63,428 nt of DNA, filler included, from Cercozoa sp. M6MM (GCA_040357565.1; 11 parts of 11 records of this genome joined end to end with filler, not necessarily neighbours in it), one strand, 5' to 3'. Positions 2,156 to 10,709 are shown, counted from the first letter of the whole stretch. Notes: generated by a model from the letters alone, not told the origin. Made by a program: numbers and translations.

Positions 2156-2157
2156 AG

Positions 2158-2801
2158 GGAGCTGGGCACATCGTGCTCCTTCACGACGGCGCGCAAAAGT
2201 GCTTTTTCTGTCTATACTGTATCGGTAGTTTTTCCCTGTACTGTTACTGTATGTGTGTGTGTGTGCGCGCGCCTAGCTCGGACCAATCGGTGCTGGCCGT
2301 GCAGAAGGCGTTACCCGAGTTGCTGGCGCAAGGCGCGGAGCTAAAAACCATGTCGCAGCTCGACCTGCAAGCCAGTGGATGCGCAGACGTCGTTGATCCA
2401 GACGACGACGGCGACGCTGTCGACAATACCGACAATGACTGCGACGGTGTGGATGATGACTGCGATATCGCAGACGACGGAGACGACACCCCGGCGCAGA
2501 AGAGACGCCGTCATTTGCGTCGCTTGCGTCGCAAGCTCCGCCGACTGCGACATCGCGCTCACCGCCGTAACTTCAGTTTACTGCGCATGTTAGTGTTTAG
2601 ATTATGTACATTGTGCCTACAGGACGACACCGCCGGGCCCGTCGTGCCGCTTCGCGTCTGCCCGAATCGAATGTTTCGGATTCCTTGGACTCCGATTCGT
2701 CTGAATTGAAGTCGCACAAGTCGCACAAGTCGTCGAAGTCGTCAGGGTCAGACAAGTCGAACAAATCGCACCAGAGCGACATGTCGGACGATTACTACTG
2801 A
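2158..2801 (+). CDS. C-terminal part of a polysaccharide/chitin deacetylase (CE4, NodB homology) with acidic, Arg/His-rich and Ser/Lys-rich tail
   Basis: Spliced translation GAGHIVLLHDGAQNSDQSVLAVQKALPELLAQGAELKTMSQL matches the NodB end (GxIhLhHD...L...G..h.Th.EL). Ends ...DMSDDYY-TGA at 2801. Confidence 0.75.
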
Positions 2802-3309
2802 ACCTCGACTCTACTTTAATTTACAGTGCCAACGAGCATCACACATGATACTGCACTTTACTGGGTTACACTTGTTTACTGGCACAGCAACCGGACTCGC
2901 GTCCTGGGAGACCGAAAAATGAAGGTCATCTTGATGTCATCTCTCCATTGCTCGTGTGTGTTTTGATGATAGTGTCCAGCGCCTCAGCGGCTTTAACCGC
3001 TTGAGTCTTCACGCTGCATGGAGAGTCGAGGGAAGAACGGCCAGGCAAACAACTGACCGACACACACACGCACGCGACTCACGTTGTGTGCACGAGGTAA
3101 CGTGAGCGCAAGACAATACGTGAGGGTTCCTCGTGACCCTTGGAACTCCCGGAGACGCACACACACATGCACACGCACACGCACATGACTTGGGAGTACA
3201 CGGGGACCACGGCGGTGGTTTCGTTGAATCAGATACAGTTGGTAAATTTAAATTTACGTTCTGAGGTGCTGGCAACTCTCACATGCGATGTGAGCCGTGT
3301 TGCCGCAAC

Positions 3310-6300
3310 TTACATGATGAGACACGGGCACGTGGCCTCCTCCTCGGTCGTGGTGGTGGCCTCGGGCAGGAAGGCCGGGTTGTACGACTCGGAGTAGCGA
3401 CGCTGCATGCGTGCCTCATCGACGAGGTTCTGATTCTGCTTGGCCTGCACACACGTGTGCTGCTGAATGACACAAACACACACAAGGAAGAAACCGACCT
3501 GAGTTTCGAGACGCTGCTTCTCCTCGTCGTCCTGCTGATCCTTGGCGAGCTTGGCCTCAAGTTCCTCGGCTAGGCGCTGTTCCTGGTAGTTGAAACAACA
3601 TCGGAGTAAGCACCGCTGTTGCACTGGCATAAAGGAGGTACCTCGGCCTTGCGAGCAGCCTCAGCTTCGCGAGCTAGACGCTGCTCCTGCGGAAAGAAAG
3701 AATGCCTTAACAGAAGGGTCCCTCAGAAAGCAACAGAGACACACCTCAGCCTGGCGCTCGGCTTCCTTGCGCGCAGTCTCCTCCGCAGCCTAGGAAAACA
3801 CATTTGCTAAAGAGAGTACTTGGTTCAACGAGCAAATACCAGACGCTCCATGCGTTCTTGCTCCGCACGTCGCTTCGCTTCGGCTTCGGCCGCCAAACGC
3901 TGCTCCTGTGTGGTTCAAACATTGGTAATACAACATCACAATGAAGACAAAAAAGGCACCTCAGCAATACGTTGGGCCTCCTTTCGCGCGGCTTCCTCGG
4001 CAGCCTGCACACAATTCACACGACTATTCGAACAAAGGGAGTACGTATAGCTGGGTGTACTTCTCGGTCGAGACGCTCCTGTTCGAGACGCCTGGCCTGC
4101 CACAAGACACAACCATCAAGTGAGCCAAGTCGAAAGACACATGAAAGAAAGCTACCTCAGCCTCGGCTTCACGAGCGAGACGCTCTTCCTGAACAAAGCA
4201 ATGTGGGAATAGAGGTTTATTTGTACACCAACAAGTAGTACCTCGGCCTTCTTGCGCGCGGCTTCTTCAGCAGCCTGCATCGCAGCGTTTTCCGAATCCA
4301 CAATCATATACAGCCAAACAACAAGGCACCTCGCGTTCCAGTCGTTCCTGCTCGAGTCGTTTGGCCTGCCGAAACACACAAGGCTTTCCACAAAGCGCAA
4401 AGAATGAAGTATTTTCTTCGAGCTACCTCAGCTTCGGCAGCTTCGCGAGCGAGACGCTCCGCCTGCCAGGAGCGCTCGTAAATACAAGACAAGAAGGCTA
4501 CGAAAAAGGAAAAAGTACCTCCAGTCGGGCGGCCTCCTCAGCAGCCTGCCAACAATATTGGAAACGTGAAAGGAACAAAGAAAGCAGAAAAGTCACCTCG
4601 CGCTCGAGACGTTCCTGCTCGAGACGCTTCGCTTCGGCTTCGGCAGCTTCGCGAGCAAGACGTTCCTCCTGCACCCATATATATATATATATATATATAT
4701 AGACATATTTATATGTATATATATATAAAAGTGTCAGCCCATAAGATGTCAGACATGTGGGGAAAGTAAAATCACCTCCTTGCGCGCCGCTTCCGCAGCG
4801 GCCTAAATCAAATCAAGTCAGTTAGATCAAACCAAGTTAAGTCAAGTCAAGCCAAGTCAAGTCAAGTCAAGCCAGTCAAGTCAAACTGAGTGAATGGAAG
4901 CTGTTTACCTCACGTTCCAGACGCTCCTGCTCGAGTCGGCGCGCCTGTCGAAACACAACACATAGAAGGGTTATTTCTTAAATTTCAATCGAGGTACCTC
5001 AGCTTCGGCAGCTTCACGAGCGAGACGTTCCTCCTAATTAAGCAAAAGTAAGCTCAAGCACTCAAGCATGGCAAATAAGGGTACCTCAGCAACACGCGCA
5101 GCCTCCAATCGAGCGGCTTCCTCAGCAGCCTAGGTCACGTATAACAACTGAACGGGCGGAAGGGGGCGGAAGGGAGCAAGCAAAGATACCTCACGCTCGA
5201 GGCGTTCTTGCTCGAGACGCTCTTGCTCGAGACGTTCCTCCTCGAGACGCTTCTCTTCAGCTTCACGGGCGAGTCGCTCCTCCTCCAGACGCTTCTCTTC
5301 GGCCTCACGGGCGAGTCGCTCCTCCTCGAGACGCTTCTCTTCAGCTTCGCGAGCGAGTCGCTCCTCCTGTCGGACAAACATACGAAATTCGCCAGCAAAA
5401 ATAAAAAGACAAACAAGACTCACTTCGGCAATGCGCTCGGCCTCCTTGCGCGCAGCTTCCGCGGCCGCCTACATCAGAAAAAGCTTGAGTCAGTGAGCTC
5501 AAATAAGAAAACCACAGAAGGGCACCTCGCGTTCAAGTCGCTCCTGTTCAAGACGCTCCTGTTCAAGACGCTCCTGCTCGAGTCGCTTCGCCTAAATATA
5601 TTTAAAAAAAACAACAAAAATAAAAAATCAATAGACATATATACATTCGCAAATACCTCAGCTTCGGCGGCTTCGCGAGCCAGACGCTCCTCCTGTAAAA
5701 GCGAGGTTTTTTGAATGAAAACAGGGAGACAACGCTCAAGCACCTCGGCGATGCGCGCGGCCTCCTTTCGTGCTGCCTCTTCAGCCGCCTACACAATCAG
5801 AAAATCTCAAGTAACTCTAGAAAAAGACAGTTCGAATCACCTCGCGTTCCAGACGCTCCTGCTCGAGTCGCTGCGCCTGTGTACAAACACAGCGACAACT
5901 GGACAAACTAGAACAGTTCAAACAAAGTGTTTACCTCAGCCTCGCGTTCCAGACGCTCTTGCTCGAGACGCTCCTCCTCGAGACGCTTCTCCTAAACAAA
6001 GGTAAGCATGCAAGGGCAGACACGAATCGCACAGCCAGGAAAAACCTCGGCAAGGCGTTCAGCCTCCAGTCGCGCAGCTTCCTCGGCAGCCTACAGCACA
6101 CAAGCACAGATTAAAATGCCTGAAGAGCCAACTGAAACTTGAGCAAGTACCTCGCGTTCGAGACGCTCCTGCTCGAGTCGCTTCGCCTGTCAACAGTATG
6201 ACAGAATGCATTGTTTGCAACGCAAAGCAAAAAATACCTCGGCCTCAGCAGCTTCGCGGGCCAGCCTTTCCTCCTGTTGAAACAAAAAGACATCCTTCAA

Positions 6301-8306
6301 AATATAAGCAAACACGAAAGCGATAGAGTACCTCGGCAATACGCTCAGCCTCCAGTCGGGCAGCTTCCTCCTGCAAAGCAAACGGTGCATTGAAAGCACT
6401 GTTCTTTGAAGACAAGAAGATACCGCAGCCAGTCTCTCAGCCTCAAGTCGGGCCGCCTCCTCAGCAGCCTGCAAAAGAACCGACCATCTCCTTGAGACAC
6501 ACAAGAAACACAAAGGAAAAGCAAACCTCTCGCTCCAGTCGCTCCTGCTCTAGTCGCTGTGCCTGCAAGAGAACGATAAGACAATCAGAGTCAGTTTGTA
6601 TAGTTAGAGAGCACCTCAGCTTCAGCAGCTTCGCGCGCGAGACGCTCCTCCTAACAATTCGAACAGATGAAAGTGTATTTTGGAATAATGAATTGGAAGC
6701 ACCTCAGCGATGCGCTCAGCCTCGAGTCTGGCAGCTTCCGCAGCGGCCTGAGGCACGAGATAAGAAAAGATAAGGTACGATAGTAGCAAGAACAAAGGCA
6801 AATACCTCACGTTCGAGACGCTCCTGCTCGAGTCGCTTTGCCTGTTTTAGTTTGGTGTTGACTTGCAGGCTGAAAGCTGGAAGAAGGATACCTCGGCTTC
6901 GGCCGCCTCGCGGGCAAGACGTTCCTCCTGAACAGTTAAACACGTGCACTGAATGCTTGAAAAAGAAAAAAACTGTACCTCAGCGATGCGCTTGGCTTCT
7001 TCCTCGGCGGCCTGAGGAAATGAATCAGTTTCCTTCATTCTGTTTGTAGTTAAAAAAGCAACCTCGCGTTCCAGACGTTCCTCCTCGGCCTTTCGCGCAG
7101 CTTCGGCTTCGCGAGCGAGGCGTTCCTCCTGTGTCAACACACCAAGAACTCTACTGTCCACAATGCACCTAGCAGTAGACTAGTACCTCGGCAATGCGCG
7201 CAGCTTCCTTGCGTGCAGCCTCCTCGGCGGCCTGGTGAAAGGTTAAGAGTGAAGGCGAAAGGTGTGAGTGGGGGCACGAAAGAAAAAACTACTTCGCGTT
7301 CGAGACGCTCTTGCTCGAGTCGCTGCGCCTGTCAGAGTCGAGCTTTCACTTTAAAAACAAACAAAACACAACAACTGAAACTATCGATACCTCGGCTTCA
7401 GCTTCGGCAGCTTCGCGAGCGATACGCGCCTCCTGTGTACAAGCCTATGCCGACTGAATAAAACGAGTACAAGGGCAAAAAACCTCAGCTTCCTTTCGAG
7501 CAGCTTCCTCAGCGGCCTAAGCAAAGCAAGGGTAACAGAACTCAGTGAGACAGACAGTAAGACGGCGTGTAAGACGGCAATACCTCGCGTTCCAAACGCT
7601 CTTGCTCCTCGCGCTGCTTGGCTTCGGCGGCTTCATTGGCCTCGTCGGTCTTCTCGTCCTCGAGCAGGTCTGTTTCAACAATCTCGTCAACGGTGTCGTC
7701 CATGGGTGCAATCTCATCGACGGTCTCGTCAAGTGCTTCGTCGCCCGACGACTCCAGCGCTTCGACCTCGCTTTCTTCCATCGCTTCGATCTCTTCGGCA
7801 TCGACGGTTTCGCCTGCCTCGGTCTCTTGCTGCTCAGCAAGTTCGTCCTCCGACTTGAAGCTCGCTCGCACCGACTGCGATGGCGGACGACGCGTCACAT
7901 TGCCCATCGTCGGACGGTCCAAACTGTGGAAGACCAGGTTGACACTTCCAACAAACAAAGCACAAGCGAAACTGACATTGCGTGCTCAAGTTCGGGCGAC
8001 TTGTCGCTCCGCTTCTTGCGCAGGCTCGGCGGCACACCCATTCCGGGCAGAGGCATGCCCATGCCAGGCTTGGCACCGCCACCCATCATCGCCGGGTCTG
8101 TGGACAAAACCCAAGTTATCTTGTTGGTTACCTTTTAACAGCAATAGGGGTGAAAGAAACACGCACTGAAAACGCCGGCAAGACCACTGGCGAGATCTTT
8201 GACGCTCTTCTGCGACAGAAACAACCAAATCAAAAACGAAAGCGAACACGCAACAAACAAAACGCAACATCGCTGTTTTGGACTAACTCACCTTTTCCTC
8301 AGACAT
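3310..8306 (-). CDS. ~44-exon protein: CPI-like motif, acidic block, very long E/R/A/K single-alpha-helix repeat, C-terminal CaaX (CPCLIM)
   Basis: ATG at 8306; MSEEKKSVKDLASGLAGVFNPAMMGGG...SPELEHAILDRPTMGNVTRRPPS; ~38 short GT-AG-bounded exons (AAEEAARKEAERIAE / EERLAREAAEAE / AKRLEQERLERE); last exon ...EEEATCPCLIM-TAA. Confidence 0.88.
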
Positions 8307-8697
8307 CTGGGTGTTAACAACTGCGAGACAAACTAGGAACACTGTCAGAGGGCGCAATCGCAAGGCGTGCACACTCGTCCTTTGCCAGTATTTTTGGGCG
8401 AGACTCGCTTGAAACAAACGGCGCCAAAAATCACCCTAGATCACTGCATTTAAGATCCACGGCTAGCACCGCGGTGGTGCGCTTGAGTGCTCTGTCTGTA
8501 CACGTTCCAGAATCCTCAGGTGCGCGTGCAGTGGTGGCAAAAATCTCTTGATCGAGCTTTCGGTGGGTGCCTTCTGTTGTGAAGCGTCGGAGCGCACGAA
8601 AGGAGGGCGAAAGCTCGCAAAGGAGAGCGTCTGCTACTGCTATGCGCGTGTGTCTGTTCGACGATGCCGTTCAACTGAGCACTCGGCAGCAGCACCG

Positions 8698-10483
8698 ATG
8701 GACGCGCGTGCAGTCGGTAAGAGCTGCTTCATATGTGTGGGTTGGGAACTACTTGAGATTTAGGCACTGTTTAGGCACTGATGCGTGCATCGTCCAGAGG
8801 TCTGCTGACTCTGCTACCGAACAAGCCACAGAACGAGGCCGTGGTGATTGTGCTCCCATCGGCACATGCGCTTCGCCTGCTGAACAATCCTACTTTGGTG
8901 CCTGTCTGCATGGATGCCTTGATCGAAGGTAGAGGCGAGACCTTGAAACGTGAGCTTTTGTGGAATACACACGTCTTGTTTTGTGCAGAAGATGAGGAAG
9001 AACCGCGCATCGAAGACATTGTAGAACGTATCAGTGCGACTCGAAAAGTTATGCGCGAATGCGTCATCTGTGGCACTGGTTTCCCGGTAGTTTCTTACAC
9101 TTCTTTGTCATACTTCTCTTGATTATCTTTAAACCTTCAGAGAGAACGCGACAAGGAGCACGTGCGTCAGATTGTGCGCTCGCTGGGCGGCACCTACTCG
9201 GGCAGTCTTGTGGCCAAGAGTAAGTCGCAAGTGTGTTTTAGTTCCCCTGTACAGTCGCCTGACCCTGTGTTGTCCCCTGGTGCAGCAACGGCACTGGTGG
9301 TGGCGTCGGTGCCGTCGGACAAGTACCGATCGGCGCTGGAGCACGGGATCGCCGTGCGGTCGCCGCTGTGGATCGAGGAGTGCTGGACGCACGGCAAGCA
9401 CGTCGAGCCGCCACCTGACGCACCTTTGCACCCGTGGATGCCGGCGCTTTTTGCTGGGTACACTTTGGACCGTACACATGGATTGCACTCTTGTACTGTG
9501 CCTCTTATATGTTGTATTGTGCCTCTTGTATTGTATTGTGCCTCTTGTATTGTGCCTCTTGTATTGTGCCTCTTGTATTGTGCCCATACTGTACATTCCC
9601 TTTTGAACAGTTGGCAAGTCGTGATTGACGAGGCTGCCATCGCGCCCGGTGAAGCACAGCGTCTGCGCGAGTGCGTGCAGCAGCACGGTGGCGCTGTATG
9701 TTTACCCCCCCTGTCTCCCCTTGTTACCCCTGTTTATTTCGCTGTACATCTTACACCCAGGTGGCCATGGCGGACCGACTGCGCGACAGTAGAGTGACGC
9801 ACCTGGTGACCACTTCAGTCCACACGGACGCCTTCTCCGCTGCCAATCGCTCTATGAACTTTGGCGGTAGCTTTACCCCCCCCCCCCATCCCTACCCCTT
9901 ACTCCCTGCCGCAGACAGTATAAACACGCCGAAAGTCGTGCTGCCGTCGTTTTTGGCGGATTTTGTCGCCTCCAAAGGCTTGCTCGATGTGAGTGATATG
10001 GTAAGTTCCACCCCCTCCTTCACTGACCCTTCTTGATTCCTTGCGTTGGGACAGAAGTACATGGTGATCGACAAAAGCGAGTCGACTTTTCTGTCGCAAA
10101 TGACGGCGCGTGACTCATTGGATGTAGTTTACCCCCCCCCCCAGTCAACCCTTTACCCCCTACCCTGTGTGCACAGAGTGACGATGCTCCGTCGTTGGTG
10201 CGGCCGAAGAAACGGCAGGAACAAACGACGCCGACTTTTCGGCGTTTCGTGCAGCCGAGTGACCCGTCTCCTACAGTAGTTTTATCCCCCATCTTACCCC
10301 GTAATACCCTGACCTCTTGACCCTCTTTATACCCCCTCCCTCCAGGCACCGTTGAGCCCGACGCAGCCGGTGGAACTGCTGCCGATCACGCCGCCGGTCG
10401 AGTCGCAAAAACAAGAGGAAAACGCGGCTGTTGTTTCGGAGAAACGCGACGCTTTGGACGCCTTGGCCGAGTCGGTCTTGATG
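8698..10483 (+). CDS. Multi-BRCT protein, TOPBP1/ECT2-like N-terminus (3' truncated)
   Basis: ICGTGF...VRQIVRSLGGTYSGSL...ALVVASVPSDKYRSALEHGIAVRSPLWIEECW (BRCT with WxxxC), then a second BRCT CVQQHGGA...VTHLVT...VVLPSFLAD. Confidence 0.72.
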
Positions 10484-10517
10484 GTAGTTTACCCTACCCC
10501 CCCCCCCCCATATCTCC

Positions 10518-10709
10518 TTACCCCTACCCTACCCCTACCCCTACCCCTACCCCACCCCTACCCCTACCCCTAACCTACCCCTACCCCCTACCCTACCCTA
10601 CCCTACCCCTACCCCTACCCCTACCCCTACCCCTACCCCCTACCCCTACCGTACCCCTACCGTACCCCTACCCTACCCCTACCCCTACCCTACCCCTACC
10701 CCTACCCTA
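10518..10709 (+). repeat. (CCCCTA/CCCTA)n simple repeat inside an intron at the contig end
   Basis: Tandem ACCCCT/ACCCT units following the donor at 10484. Confidence 0.9.

Follow-up and report, generated by a model that had tools for sequence, protein, structure and literature searches.

A predicted CaaX-ended protein with a charged helix of about 610 residues and a divergent capping-protein-interaction-like string, encoded by 44 exons in Cercozoa sp. M6MM

The stretch of DNA analysed here (the window) comprises 63,428 nucleotides from Cercozoa sp. M6MM (GCA_040357565.1), in which 11 parts of 11 records are joined end to end with filler. On its minus strand, from position 8306 down to 3310, it carries a gene predicted to encode an 820-residue protein consisting of a basic head, an acidic block, a very long charged helix and a C-terminal CaaX box. 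We tentatively read the product as a lipid-anchored molecular spacer, in which the helix would carry a head bearing short linear motifs, with actin capping protein as one candidate partner. An earlier reading of this DNA from the sequence alone (the sequence-only reading) had proposed an acidic block, a very long charged helix and a CaaX box behind an N-terminal head, and this layout was borne out by the spliced model. The elements of the gene are the following.

3310-8306, minus strand: whole gene model, based on the splice-aware model, the exon/intron GC contrast, the third-position bias and the single copy
7977-8306, minus strand: exons 1-3 (8306-8292, 8209-8167, 8097-7977), encoding the start and the basic G/P/M-rich head down to ...SPELEHA
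7924-7976, minus strand: intron 3, 53 nt, phase 2, GTCAGT...TCTTCCACAG, dividing the motif that resembles capping-protein-interaction (CPI) motifs within the Ile60 codon
7878-7990, minus strand: CPI-like string L56-E-H-A-I-L-D-R63-P64-T-M-G-N-V-T-R-R-P-P-S75, intron included
7623-7850, minus strand: acidic block (residues 85-160) of net charge -34 that contains acidic-hydrophobic repeats of the DETVDEI kind
3511-7622, minus strand: predicted charged helical repeat region, residues 161-772, made up of the end of exon 4 and 39 phase-0/phase-0 exons
5190-5366, minus strand: exon 27, which at 59 residues is the longest of the repeat exons, analysed with Tandem Repeats Finder (TRF) and AlphaFold2 (AF2)
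3310-3444, minus strand: last exon, AKQNQNLVDEARMQRRYSESYNPAFLPEATTTTEEEATCPCLIM followed by TAA; single copy
3313-3330, minus strand: CPCLIM, the putative CaaX box CLIM with a second Cys
3261-3313, minus strand: as a caveat, a candidate 53-nt GTAAGT...CAG intron across the stop codon, atypical in composition and acceptor

The contig that harbors the gene (C527) occupies positions 2156-10709 of the window and belongs to an assembly of 23.6 Mb in 2235 contigs. The minus strand of the gene is built of dozens of short GC-rich coding blocks, which end in GAG/gt and restart with (c/t)ag/G, separated by AT-rich spacers of about 55 nt. A listing of its open reading frames (ORFs) yielded fragments only, in line with the earlier statement that ORF-based annotation misses the intron-split motif, and all the strings quoted in the sequence-only reading were found on this strand. 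The exon model was predicted from the sequence by splice-aware dynamic programming and was then revised manually at the N-terminus and at two introns that are in frame and free of stop codons. The automatic model was rejected, as it kept these two introns and followed an N-terminal path with introns of 105 and 114 nt and an odd peptide. In the corrected model, a coding sequence (CDS) of 2463 nt starts with the ATG at 8306, ends with the TAA at 3312-3310 and comprises 44 exons, separated by 43 GT-AG introns whose lengths are 50-107 nt (median 56). The GC content is 0.645 in the exons vs 0.408 in the introns, and the GC content at third codon positions of exons 1-3 (0.71) is similar to that of the remaining CDS. 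From intron 4 on, the intron phase is 0, and the length of each of exons 5-43 is divisible by 3. The start codon is not certain: upstream of it the frame has no stop as far as 8436, and a CAG precedes the ATG. Exons 4, 27 and 44 each matched only themselves in searches of the whole assembly, indicating a single-copy gene with no paralogues of these exons in the genome. We take the predicted gene to be real; it looks expressed, occurs in a single copy, is restricted to its lineage and belongs to a protist rich in introns.

Exons 5-43 (3499-7516, minus strand; 27-177 nt) are symmetric without exception (39/39, phase 0/0), so that skipping or duplication of any one of them would leave the reading frame intact. 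Three types recur among the repeat exons: type A, of 45 nt (AAEEAARKEAERIAE), type B, of 36 nt (EERLAREAAEAE) and type C, of 36 nt (AKRLEQERLERE). They succeed one another in A-B-C order, with some variants fused or shortened, so that the unit encodes 39 residues (45 + 36 + 36 nt). Micro-exon copies of the same type share a nucleotide identity of 0.74-0.84. Their differences lie mostly at the third codon position (76/86 for type B, 141/169 for type C), and synonymous codon differences outnumber nonsynonymous ones by 76:5 in type B and by 124:28 in type C. The introns that follow the repeat exons resemble each other no more than shuffled sequence does (identity 0.55-0.61 vs 0.52-0.57 when shuffled). 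TRF detected no long-period DNA repeat in the gene, only local ones; exon 27 holds an internal, intron-less tandem of 3.4 copies of 42 nt. Because of the contrast between exons and introns and the third-position bias, we conclude that the predicted repeat exons truly code for protein and are under selection. Since the differences fall at codon position 3 and the introns are as unlike as shuffled sequence, the repeat appears to stem from ancient duplications of exon blocks, the copies having been maintained by purifying selection acting on the peptide.

Some of the introns have features of their own. Introns 31 and 30 (4669-4775 and 4803-4908, minus strand) are about twice as long as usual; one of the two contains an (AT)25 microsatellite (4677-4727) and the other a TCAAG/20-mer tandem repeat (4808-4884). 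Introns 9, 10, 23, 26, 32 and 43 (e.g. 5693-5743, 5367-5423 and 3445-3498) have a length divisible by 3 and no in-frame stop. Retention of one of these would keep the frame and add 17-19 mostly hydrophobic residues (e.g. VLERCLPVFIQKTSLLQ) to the charged helix; two of the six are those kept by the automatic model.

The repeat region (612 residues) is composed of E (34%), A (26%), R (18%), L (10%), Q (5%) and K (4%) and contains neither Pro nor Gly. The longest run made up of E/R/A/K/L/Q/I/D/V/M only amounts to 566 residues, and the longest run free of Pro and Gly to 665 residues (134-798). The length of about 575 residues obtained by hand in the sequence-only reading was of the right order and is replaced by these measured values. 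We compared the number of charged pairs with that in shuffled sequence. Opposite-charge pairs were enriched at i/i+4 (175 vs 96.5±7.5 after shuffling, z = 10.4) and at i/i+3 (127 vs 96.3), and like-charge pairs at i/i+4 were depleted (35 vs 105.6, z = -9), with z-scores that are inflated by the mutual dependence of the repeat copies. An acidic partner at +4 or -4 was found for 135 of the 138 Lys and Arg residues. Hydrophobic residues gave no Fourier peak near 3.5 residues. AF2 modelled the 59 residues of exon 27 as one unbroken helix (residues 2-58) with a mean predicted local distance difference test score (pLDDT) of 98.1, a result that does not distinguish between oligomeric states. Because of the i/i+4 pairing, the absent heptad seam and the AF2 helix, we consider a monomeric single alpha-helix (SAH) the most likely state of the repeat region, ahead of a coiled coil, and the earlier proposal of an SAH is upheld by the same features as well as by the pairing of the Lys and Arg residues.

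Several properties of the region, besides the inflated z-scores, weigh against this assignment. Acidic and basic residues are unbalanced (E+D about 35% vs K+R 22%, i.e. a net charge of -77 over 612 residues), so that, with E+R+K at about 56%, the acid/base balance expected of an SAH is lacking. Furthermore, the 26% Ala and 10% Leu leave room for self-association via Ala/Leu faces. The region thus displays most, not all, of the sequence features of predicted SAHs. At 0.15 nm per residue, its contour would be about 92 nm. Helices rich in Glu and Arg/Lys (ER/K helices) have a persistence length of about 15 nm, and a worm-like chain with this value gives a root-mean-square (rms) span of about 48 nm. 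The reach of up to about 85 nm from the membrane put forward in the sequence-only reading therefore holds as an upper bound set by the contour and not as the distance at which the helix would work.

The protein ends in ...EEEATCPCLIM, directly followed by TAA. The putative CaaX box, CLIM, has Met as its last residue, which is the type recognized by farnesyltransferase, and Cys815, two residues upstream of the CaaX Cys817, is a plausible candidate for palmitoylation. The C-terminal CPCLIM, a CaaX box with a nearby Cys as already proposed, was thus read at the stop codon, and the types of enzyme that would modify it are encoded in the genome: prenyltransferase alpha repeats (PPTA) were found at two loci and the beta subunit at three, together with ICMT and with DHHC proteins (nine matches above the cut-off of the family and eleven with E ≤ 0.001). 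Several of the DHHC matches hold one or two in-frame TAG codons, which most likely arise because the six-frame search translated across introns. The residues preceding the CaaX box are acidic, not basic, and this speaks against the CaaX reading. Subject to the predicted 3' end, the assignment of a CaaX box is supported by the sequence.

At the other end, exons 1-3 encode MSEEK / KSVKDLASGLAGVF / NPAMMGGGAKPGMGMPLPGMGVPPSLRKKRSDKSPELEHA and exon 4 goes on as LDRPTMGNVTRRPPSQSVRASFKSEDELAEQQ..., so that the spliced head reads MSEEK / KSVKDLASGLAGVF / NPAMMGGG...RKKRSDKSPELEHA / ILDRPTMGNVTRRPPSQSVRASFKSEDE. This head (residues 1-84) is basic, with a net charge of +7, rich in Gly, Pro and Met (P, G and S each account for 12%), and contains LEHAILDRPTMGNVTRRPPS. 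The acidic block described in the sequence-only reading was found behind it, with 32% E and 14% D. AF2 predicted low-confidence helices in the acidic block and a non-helical conformation where exon 4 begins (first 24 residues, pLDDT 60-68). Readings of the head as a WH2, RPEL, RVxF or 14-3-3 mode-1 motif were rejected by eye for a misfit in spacing or residues.

The CPI-like motif depends on the position of intron 3 (GTCAGT...CCACAG), which cuts the Ile60 codon as AT/T. Among the 37 frame-preserving GT..AG pairs enumerated around the motif, the 53-nt pair 7924-7976 was judged by inspection to be the sole one to combine a typical length, a near-consensus donor and a pyrimidine-rich CAG acceptor with removal of the AT-rich segment only. 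A 77-nt alternative (donor CAA/GTCGCC), which deletes KSPELEHAI, was rejected because of its poor donor and the GC-rich, coding-like sequence that it would place inside the intron. The earlier proposal that a 53-nt intron splits the motif was therefore retained, its coordinates being corrected from about 7926-7978 to 7924-7976.

The CPI consensus is LxHxTxxRPK(x)6P (PMC5491179, PMC2897767). The head string, L56-E-H58-A-I60-L-D-R63-P64-T65-MGNVTR-R72-P73, agrees with it at four of the seven positions, i.e. L, H, the central R and the P that adjoins it (R63-P64). RRPP follows the core at nearly the right spacing, and the segment is basic and predicted by AF2 to be unstructured, as CPI motifs are. 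In CPI peptides, the central Arg pairs with Asp44 of capping protein beta (CP beta) and forms bonds to Ser41 and Tyr64, its mutation abolishes binding in all tested peptides, the chain bends at the conserved Pro next to it, and the interface with capping protein is mainly electrostatic (PMC2897767). The family 'tolerates significant divergence' (PMC6249002), and a segment of Samd14 with three of the seven consensus residues binds capping protein (PMC9282853). Both subunits of capping protein are encoded in the genome, CP beta on contig C339 and CP alpha on contig C1733. CP beta keeps R15, D44, Y64 and Y79 at colinear positions, and Ser41 is replaced by Gln. With the CP-beta exon, vertebrate capping protein gives a slightly higher score than does 4akr, the lowest-scoring CP-beta entry, which we take to be the Dictyostelium protein.

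The CP-beta gene, too, has introns of about 55-60 nt, suggesting that short introns are a genome-wide trait. It lies about 7 kb from a PPTA gene on the same contig (5324-6181 and 12785-13617), which is probably a coincidence.

Other observations argue against a CPI motif. Thr is replaced by Ile and Lys by Thr, and the final Pro comes one residue late (+8 vs +7 after the Lys position). A regular-expression search of the spliced model found no strict LxHxTxxRPK(x)6P and a single L.H....RP core (residues 56-64). Pfam searches with the exon 3 and exon 4 pieces, each of which holds only half of the motif, gave no match at E ≤ 10, nor did sequence searches of the PDB with exon 4 and with its first 28 residues (E ≤ 10). 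CARMIL_C (PF16000) was found nowhere in the genome, and neither was CAP-ZIP_m (PF15255), the latter being a weak negative as the control was also silent. The profile search with CPI and CAP-ZIP_m models that the sequence-only reading had proposed thus returned no match in exon pieces or genome. The consensus binds only weakly when specific C-terminal flanks are missing (PMC2897767). The earlier claim of a CPI motif is accordingly weak: the L, H, R and P are present and the genome encodes a capping protein with a conserved groove, but the T, the K, the final P and the profile matches are lacking, and the motif reads LxHxIxxRP, not LxHxTxxRP like the consensus cited there. Since neither the strict consensus nor a profile match was found, membership of the CPI family cannot be demonstrated for the predicted protein, and it seems rather doubtful that its head binds heterodimeric actin capping protein.

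If the product is the lipid-anchored spacer that we tentatively propose, Cys817 of CPCLIM would receive a farnesyl group, followed by trimming and methylation, Cys815 would probably be palmitoylated, and the tail would be fixed in the membrane. The charged helix, of about 610-665 residues, would project into the cytoplasm as a semi-flexible rod with a contour of about 90 nm and an rms span of about 50 nm. At the tip of this rod, the acidic block and the disordered, basic, Pro/Gly/Met-rich head would present short linear motifs able to recruit cytosolic partners tens of nanometres away. Capping protein, if it is one of them, would be bound via LEHAILDRP...RRPP, with Arg63 facing Asp44 of CP beta; speculatively, the acidic block might mask the adjacent basic motif electrostatically. 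What the sequence itself shows is the structure of the gene, the composition and charge pattern of its product, the motif strings and the genes for the partner and the modifying enzymes; we infer the lipidation, the monomeric state of the helix, any binding partner and the cellular role from the predicted protein. A narrower version, in which the lipid-anchored helix of about 610 residues acts as a ruler for actin capping, setting the distance of capping protein from the membrane via its divergent CPI motif, with a length tunable by the cell through exon skipping and in evolution through exon duplication, appears improbable.

We considered the possibility that the anchor and the helix are as proposed, and that the CPI-like string is there by chance, in which case the head would have another partner or no specific one, and the protein might be a passive spacer attached to the membrane, a polyanionic brush or a scaffold regulated by phosphorylation of the basic, Ser-rich head (RKKRS, RRPPS, RASF). 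This is quite conceivable. The string was found by eye and post hoc, and this carries limited weight because, by a rough compositional estimate, an L.H....RP core is expected about 0.005 times in 820 residues but some tens of times per proteome. The departures from the strict consensus and the absence of CPI profile matches in exons and genome and of a PDB match, as described above, point in the same direction. Furthermore, the K987A/R989A mutant of CARMIL1 is binding-dead, and at the position matching K987, where CARMIL presumably has Lys-x, the head has Leu followed by Asp, in an interface that is mainly electrostatic. Yet the core, with its essential Arg-Pro, sits in a disordered basic segment, exactly where CPI motifs are found, RRPP follows it at near-right spacing, a comparably divergent motif (3/7) does bind capping protein, and capping protein and its groove are conserved in the genome. 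That the anchored helix exists but forms a coiled coil or a filament rod via its Ala/Leu faces, as a cortical or membrane-skeleton element similar to lamins, paralemmin or tropomyosin, we regard as unlikely. With Ala 26% and Leu/Ile about 11%, the occupancy of the a/d positions in the best heptad register reaches 0.57 (maximum 0.75) if Ala is counted; the 39-residue unit equals, arithmetically, four heptads and one hendecad, and the AF2 monomer model is blind to the oligomeric state. This occupancy falls to 0.23 when only L/I/V/M/F are considered, a periodicity of 3.5 residues is missing, the intrahelical salt-bridge pattern at i/i+4 is very strong, and the net charge of -77 opposes self-association.

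The anchor itself would be lost if the 3' end of the model were wrong. The stop context, ATG TAA GTT, forms a perfect GTAAGT donor across the stop codon, and a CAG acceptor follows at the typical distance of 53 nt (3313-3261, minus strand), which speaks against the CaaX end. If this intron or another last exon were used, the product would be a soluble, unprenylated protein with a charged helix; splicing of 3313-3261 would give ...CPCLIIT*. We consider this very unlikely. The candidate has a GC content above the highest value among the 40 training introns (0.57 vs 0.55), its T fraction (0.19 vs 0.24) and acceptor score (-5.3 vs -1.0) are below their lowest values, and its use would add two residues only. 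In addition, a C-a-a-X sequence with an extra Cys at the stop codon is improbable by chance (about 0.2-0.3% for C-a-a-X directly at the stop, as roughly estimated from composition). The CaaX end is therefore more likely than the spliced CLIIT end.

The searches for relatives were negative and do not favor the reading as a lipid-anchored spacer. A HMMER search of 1.84 billion representative sequences with 97 residues of exon 4 (half of the motif and the acidic block) gave 0 matches, not even to itself. Scans of metagenomes, one for the exon 4 piece and another for the last 90 residues of the protein, yielded pattern matches and 0 confirmed loci. No usable match to exon 4 or exon 27 was obtained in the ESM Atlas. 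Within the databases searched, the predicted gene is an orphan.

On the plus strand, an ORF at 9162-9797 gave sub-threshold matches to BRCT (PF00533, E = 0.00097, 19.8 bits vs a cut-off of 21.3). The ORF belongs to a divergently oriented neighbor gene; between the ATG at 8306 and the first ORFs of that gene lie about 250 bp, which may hold a promoter region common to both. Another plus-strand ORF (2173-2709, 178 residues), convergent with the 3' end of the gene, encodes an Asp-rich stretch followed by KRRRHLRRLRRKLRRLRHRAHRR and has no Pfam match. CA/GT microsatellites are found at about 3090-3190, in the presumed 3' untranslated region.

If the architecture is real, the repeat region would be among the longest predicted single alpha-helices and the protein would represent a natural membrane-anchored spacer spanning tens of nanometres. 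We know of no earlier SAH joined to a CaaX lipid anchor, and literature searches for this combination and for CPI motifs of protists found nothing relevant; the combination of features, the extreme length of the helix and the triplet micro-exon structure are new to us. If the head binds capping protein, the CPI family would gain a new type of carrier, and a handle would be at hand on the distance from the membrane at which barbed ends are capped. The structure of the gene offers a clean case of repeat expansion via exon-block duplication in a compact protist genome, with fully diverged introns, and illustrates how ORF-based annotation overlooks such proteins.

The predicted protein can be compared with several known systems. 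With the CPI proteins (CARMIL, CD2AP/CIN85, CKIP-1, CapZIP, WASHCAP/FAM21, the twinfilin tail, fungal Aim21/Bsp1 and the Samd14 CPB) it shares a short basic motif in a disordered region. These proteins are otherwise mutually unrelated, so that an orphan carrier would be normal for the class; several of them are targeted to membranes, CKIP-1, for instance, by means of a PH domain and CARMIL by means of a membrane-binding domain. Unlike them, the predicted protein has no PH, LRR, SH3 or other domain, and its putative prenyl/palmitoyl anchor would lie at the far end of a helix of about 90 nm instead of being a lipid-binding domain beside the motif.

The repeat region resembles the ER/K helices of the caldesmon central repeat, the myosin VI/X lever extensions, INCENP and MAP7-type segments in its richness in E/R/K/A/Q, its lack of Pro and Gly, its i/i+4 pairs and the absence of a hydrophobic seam, and its units are similar in composition to caldesmon units of the EEEKRAAEERQRIK type. 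It differs from these helices in having Arg for Lys, 26% Ala, an acid excess (-77) and a CaaX tether, and its length of about 610 residues contrasts with the some tens to about 200 residues of the SAHs known to us. Paralemmin, B-type lamins, CENP-E/F and Spindly likewise carry a C-terminal CaaX box on a long alpha-helical protein and link membranes to the cytoskeleton; paralemmin also has extra Cys residues for palmitoylation, in parallel with the candidate site of the predicted protein. Their rods are heptad coiled coils, whereas the repeat helix lacks such a core, and the Pfam and representative-protein searches with exon pieces revealed no similarity to these elongated, CaaX-anchored helical proteins. 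As to gene structure, dozens of short phase-0/phase-0 exons, with introns recurring in step with the peptide repeat, are also found in the 54-bp exons of fibrillar collagens and in the PEVK exons of titin. Here, by contrast, the unit is a set of three exons of 45+36+36 nt encoding a helical repeat of 39 residues, and the protist gene is compact, its introns measuring about 55 nt. By analogy, the protein may combine the workings of three known kinds: the adaptors with a CPI motif, the ER/K single helices with caldesmon-like repeats, and helical proteins held by a CaaX anchor, e.g. paralemmin or lamin B.

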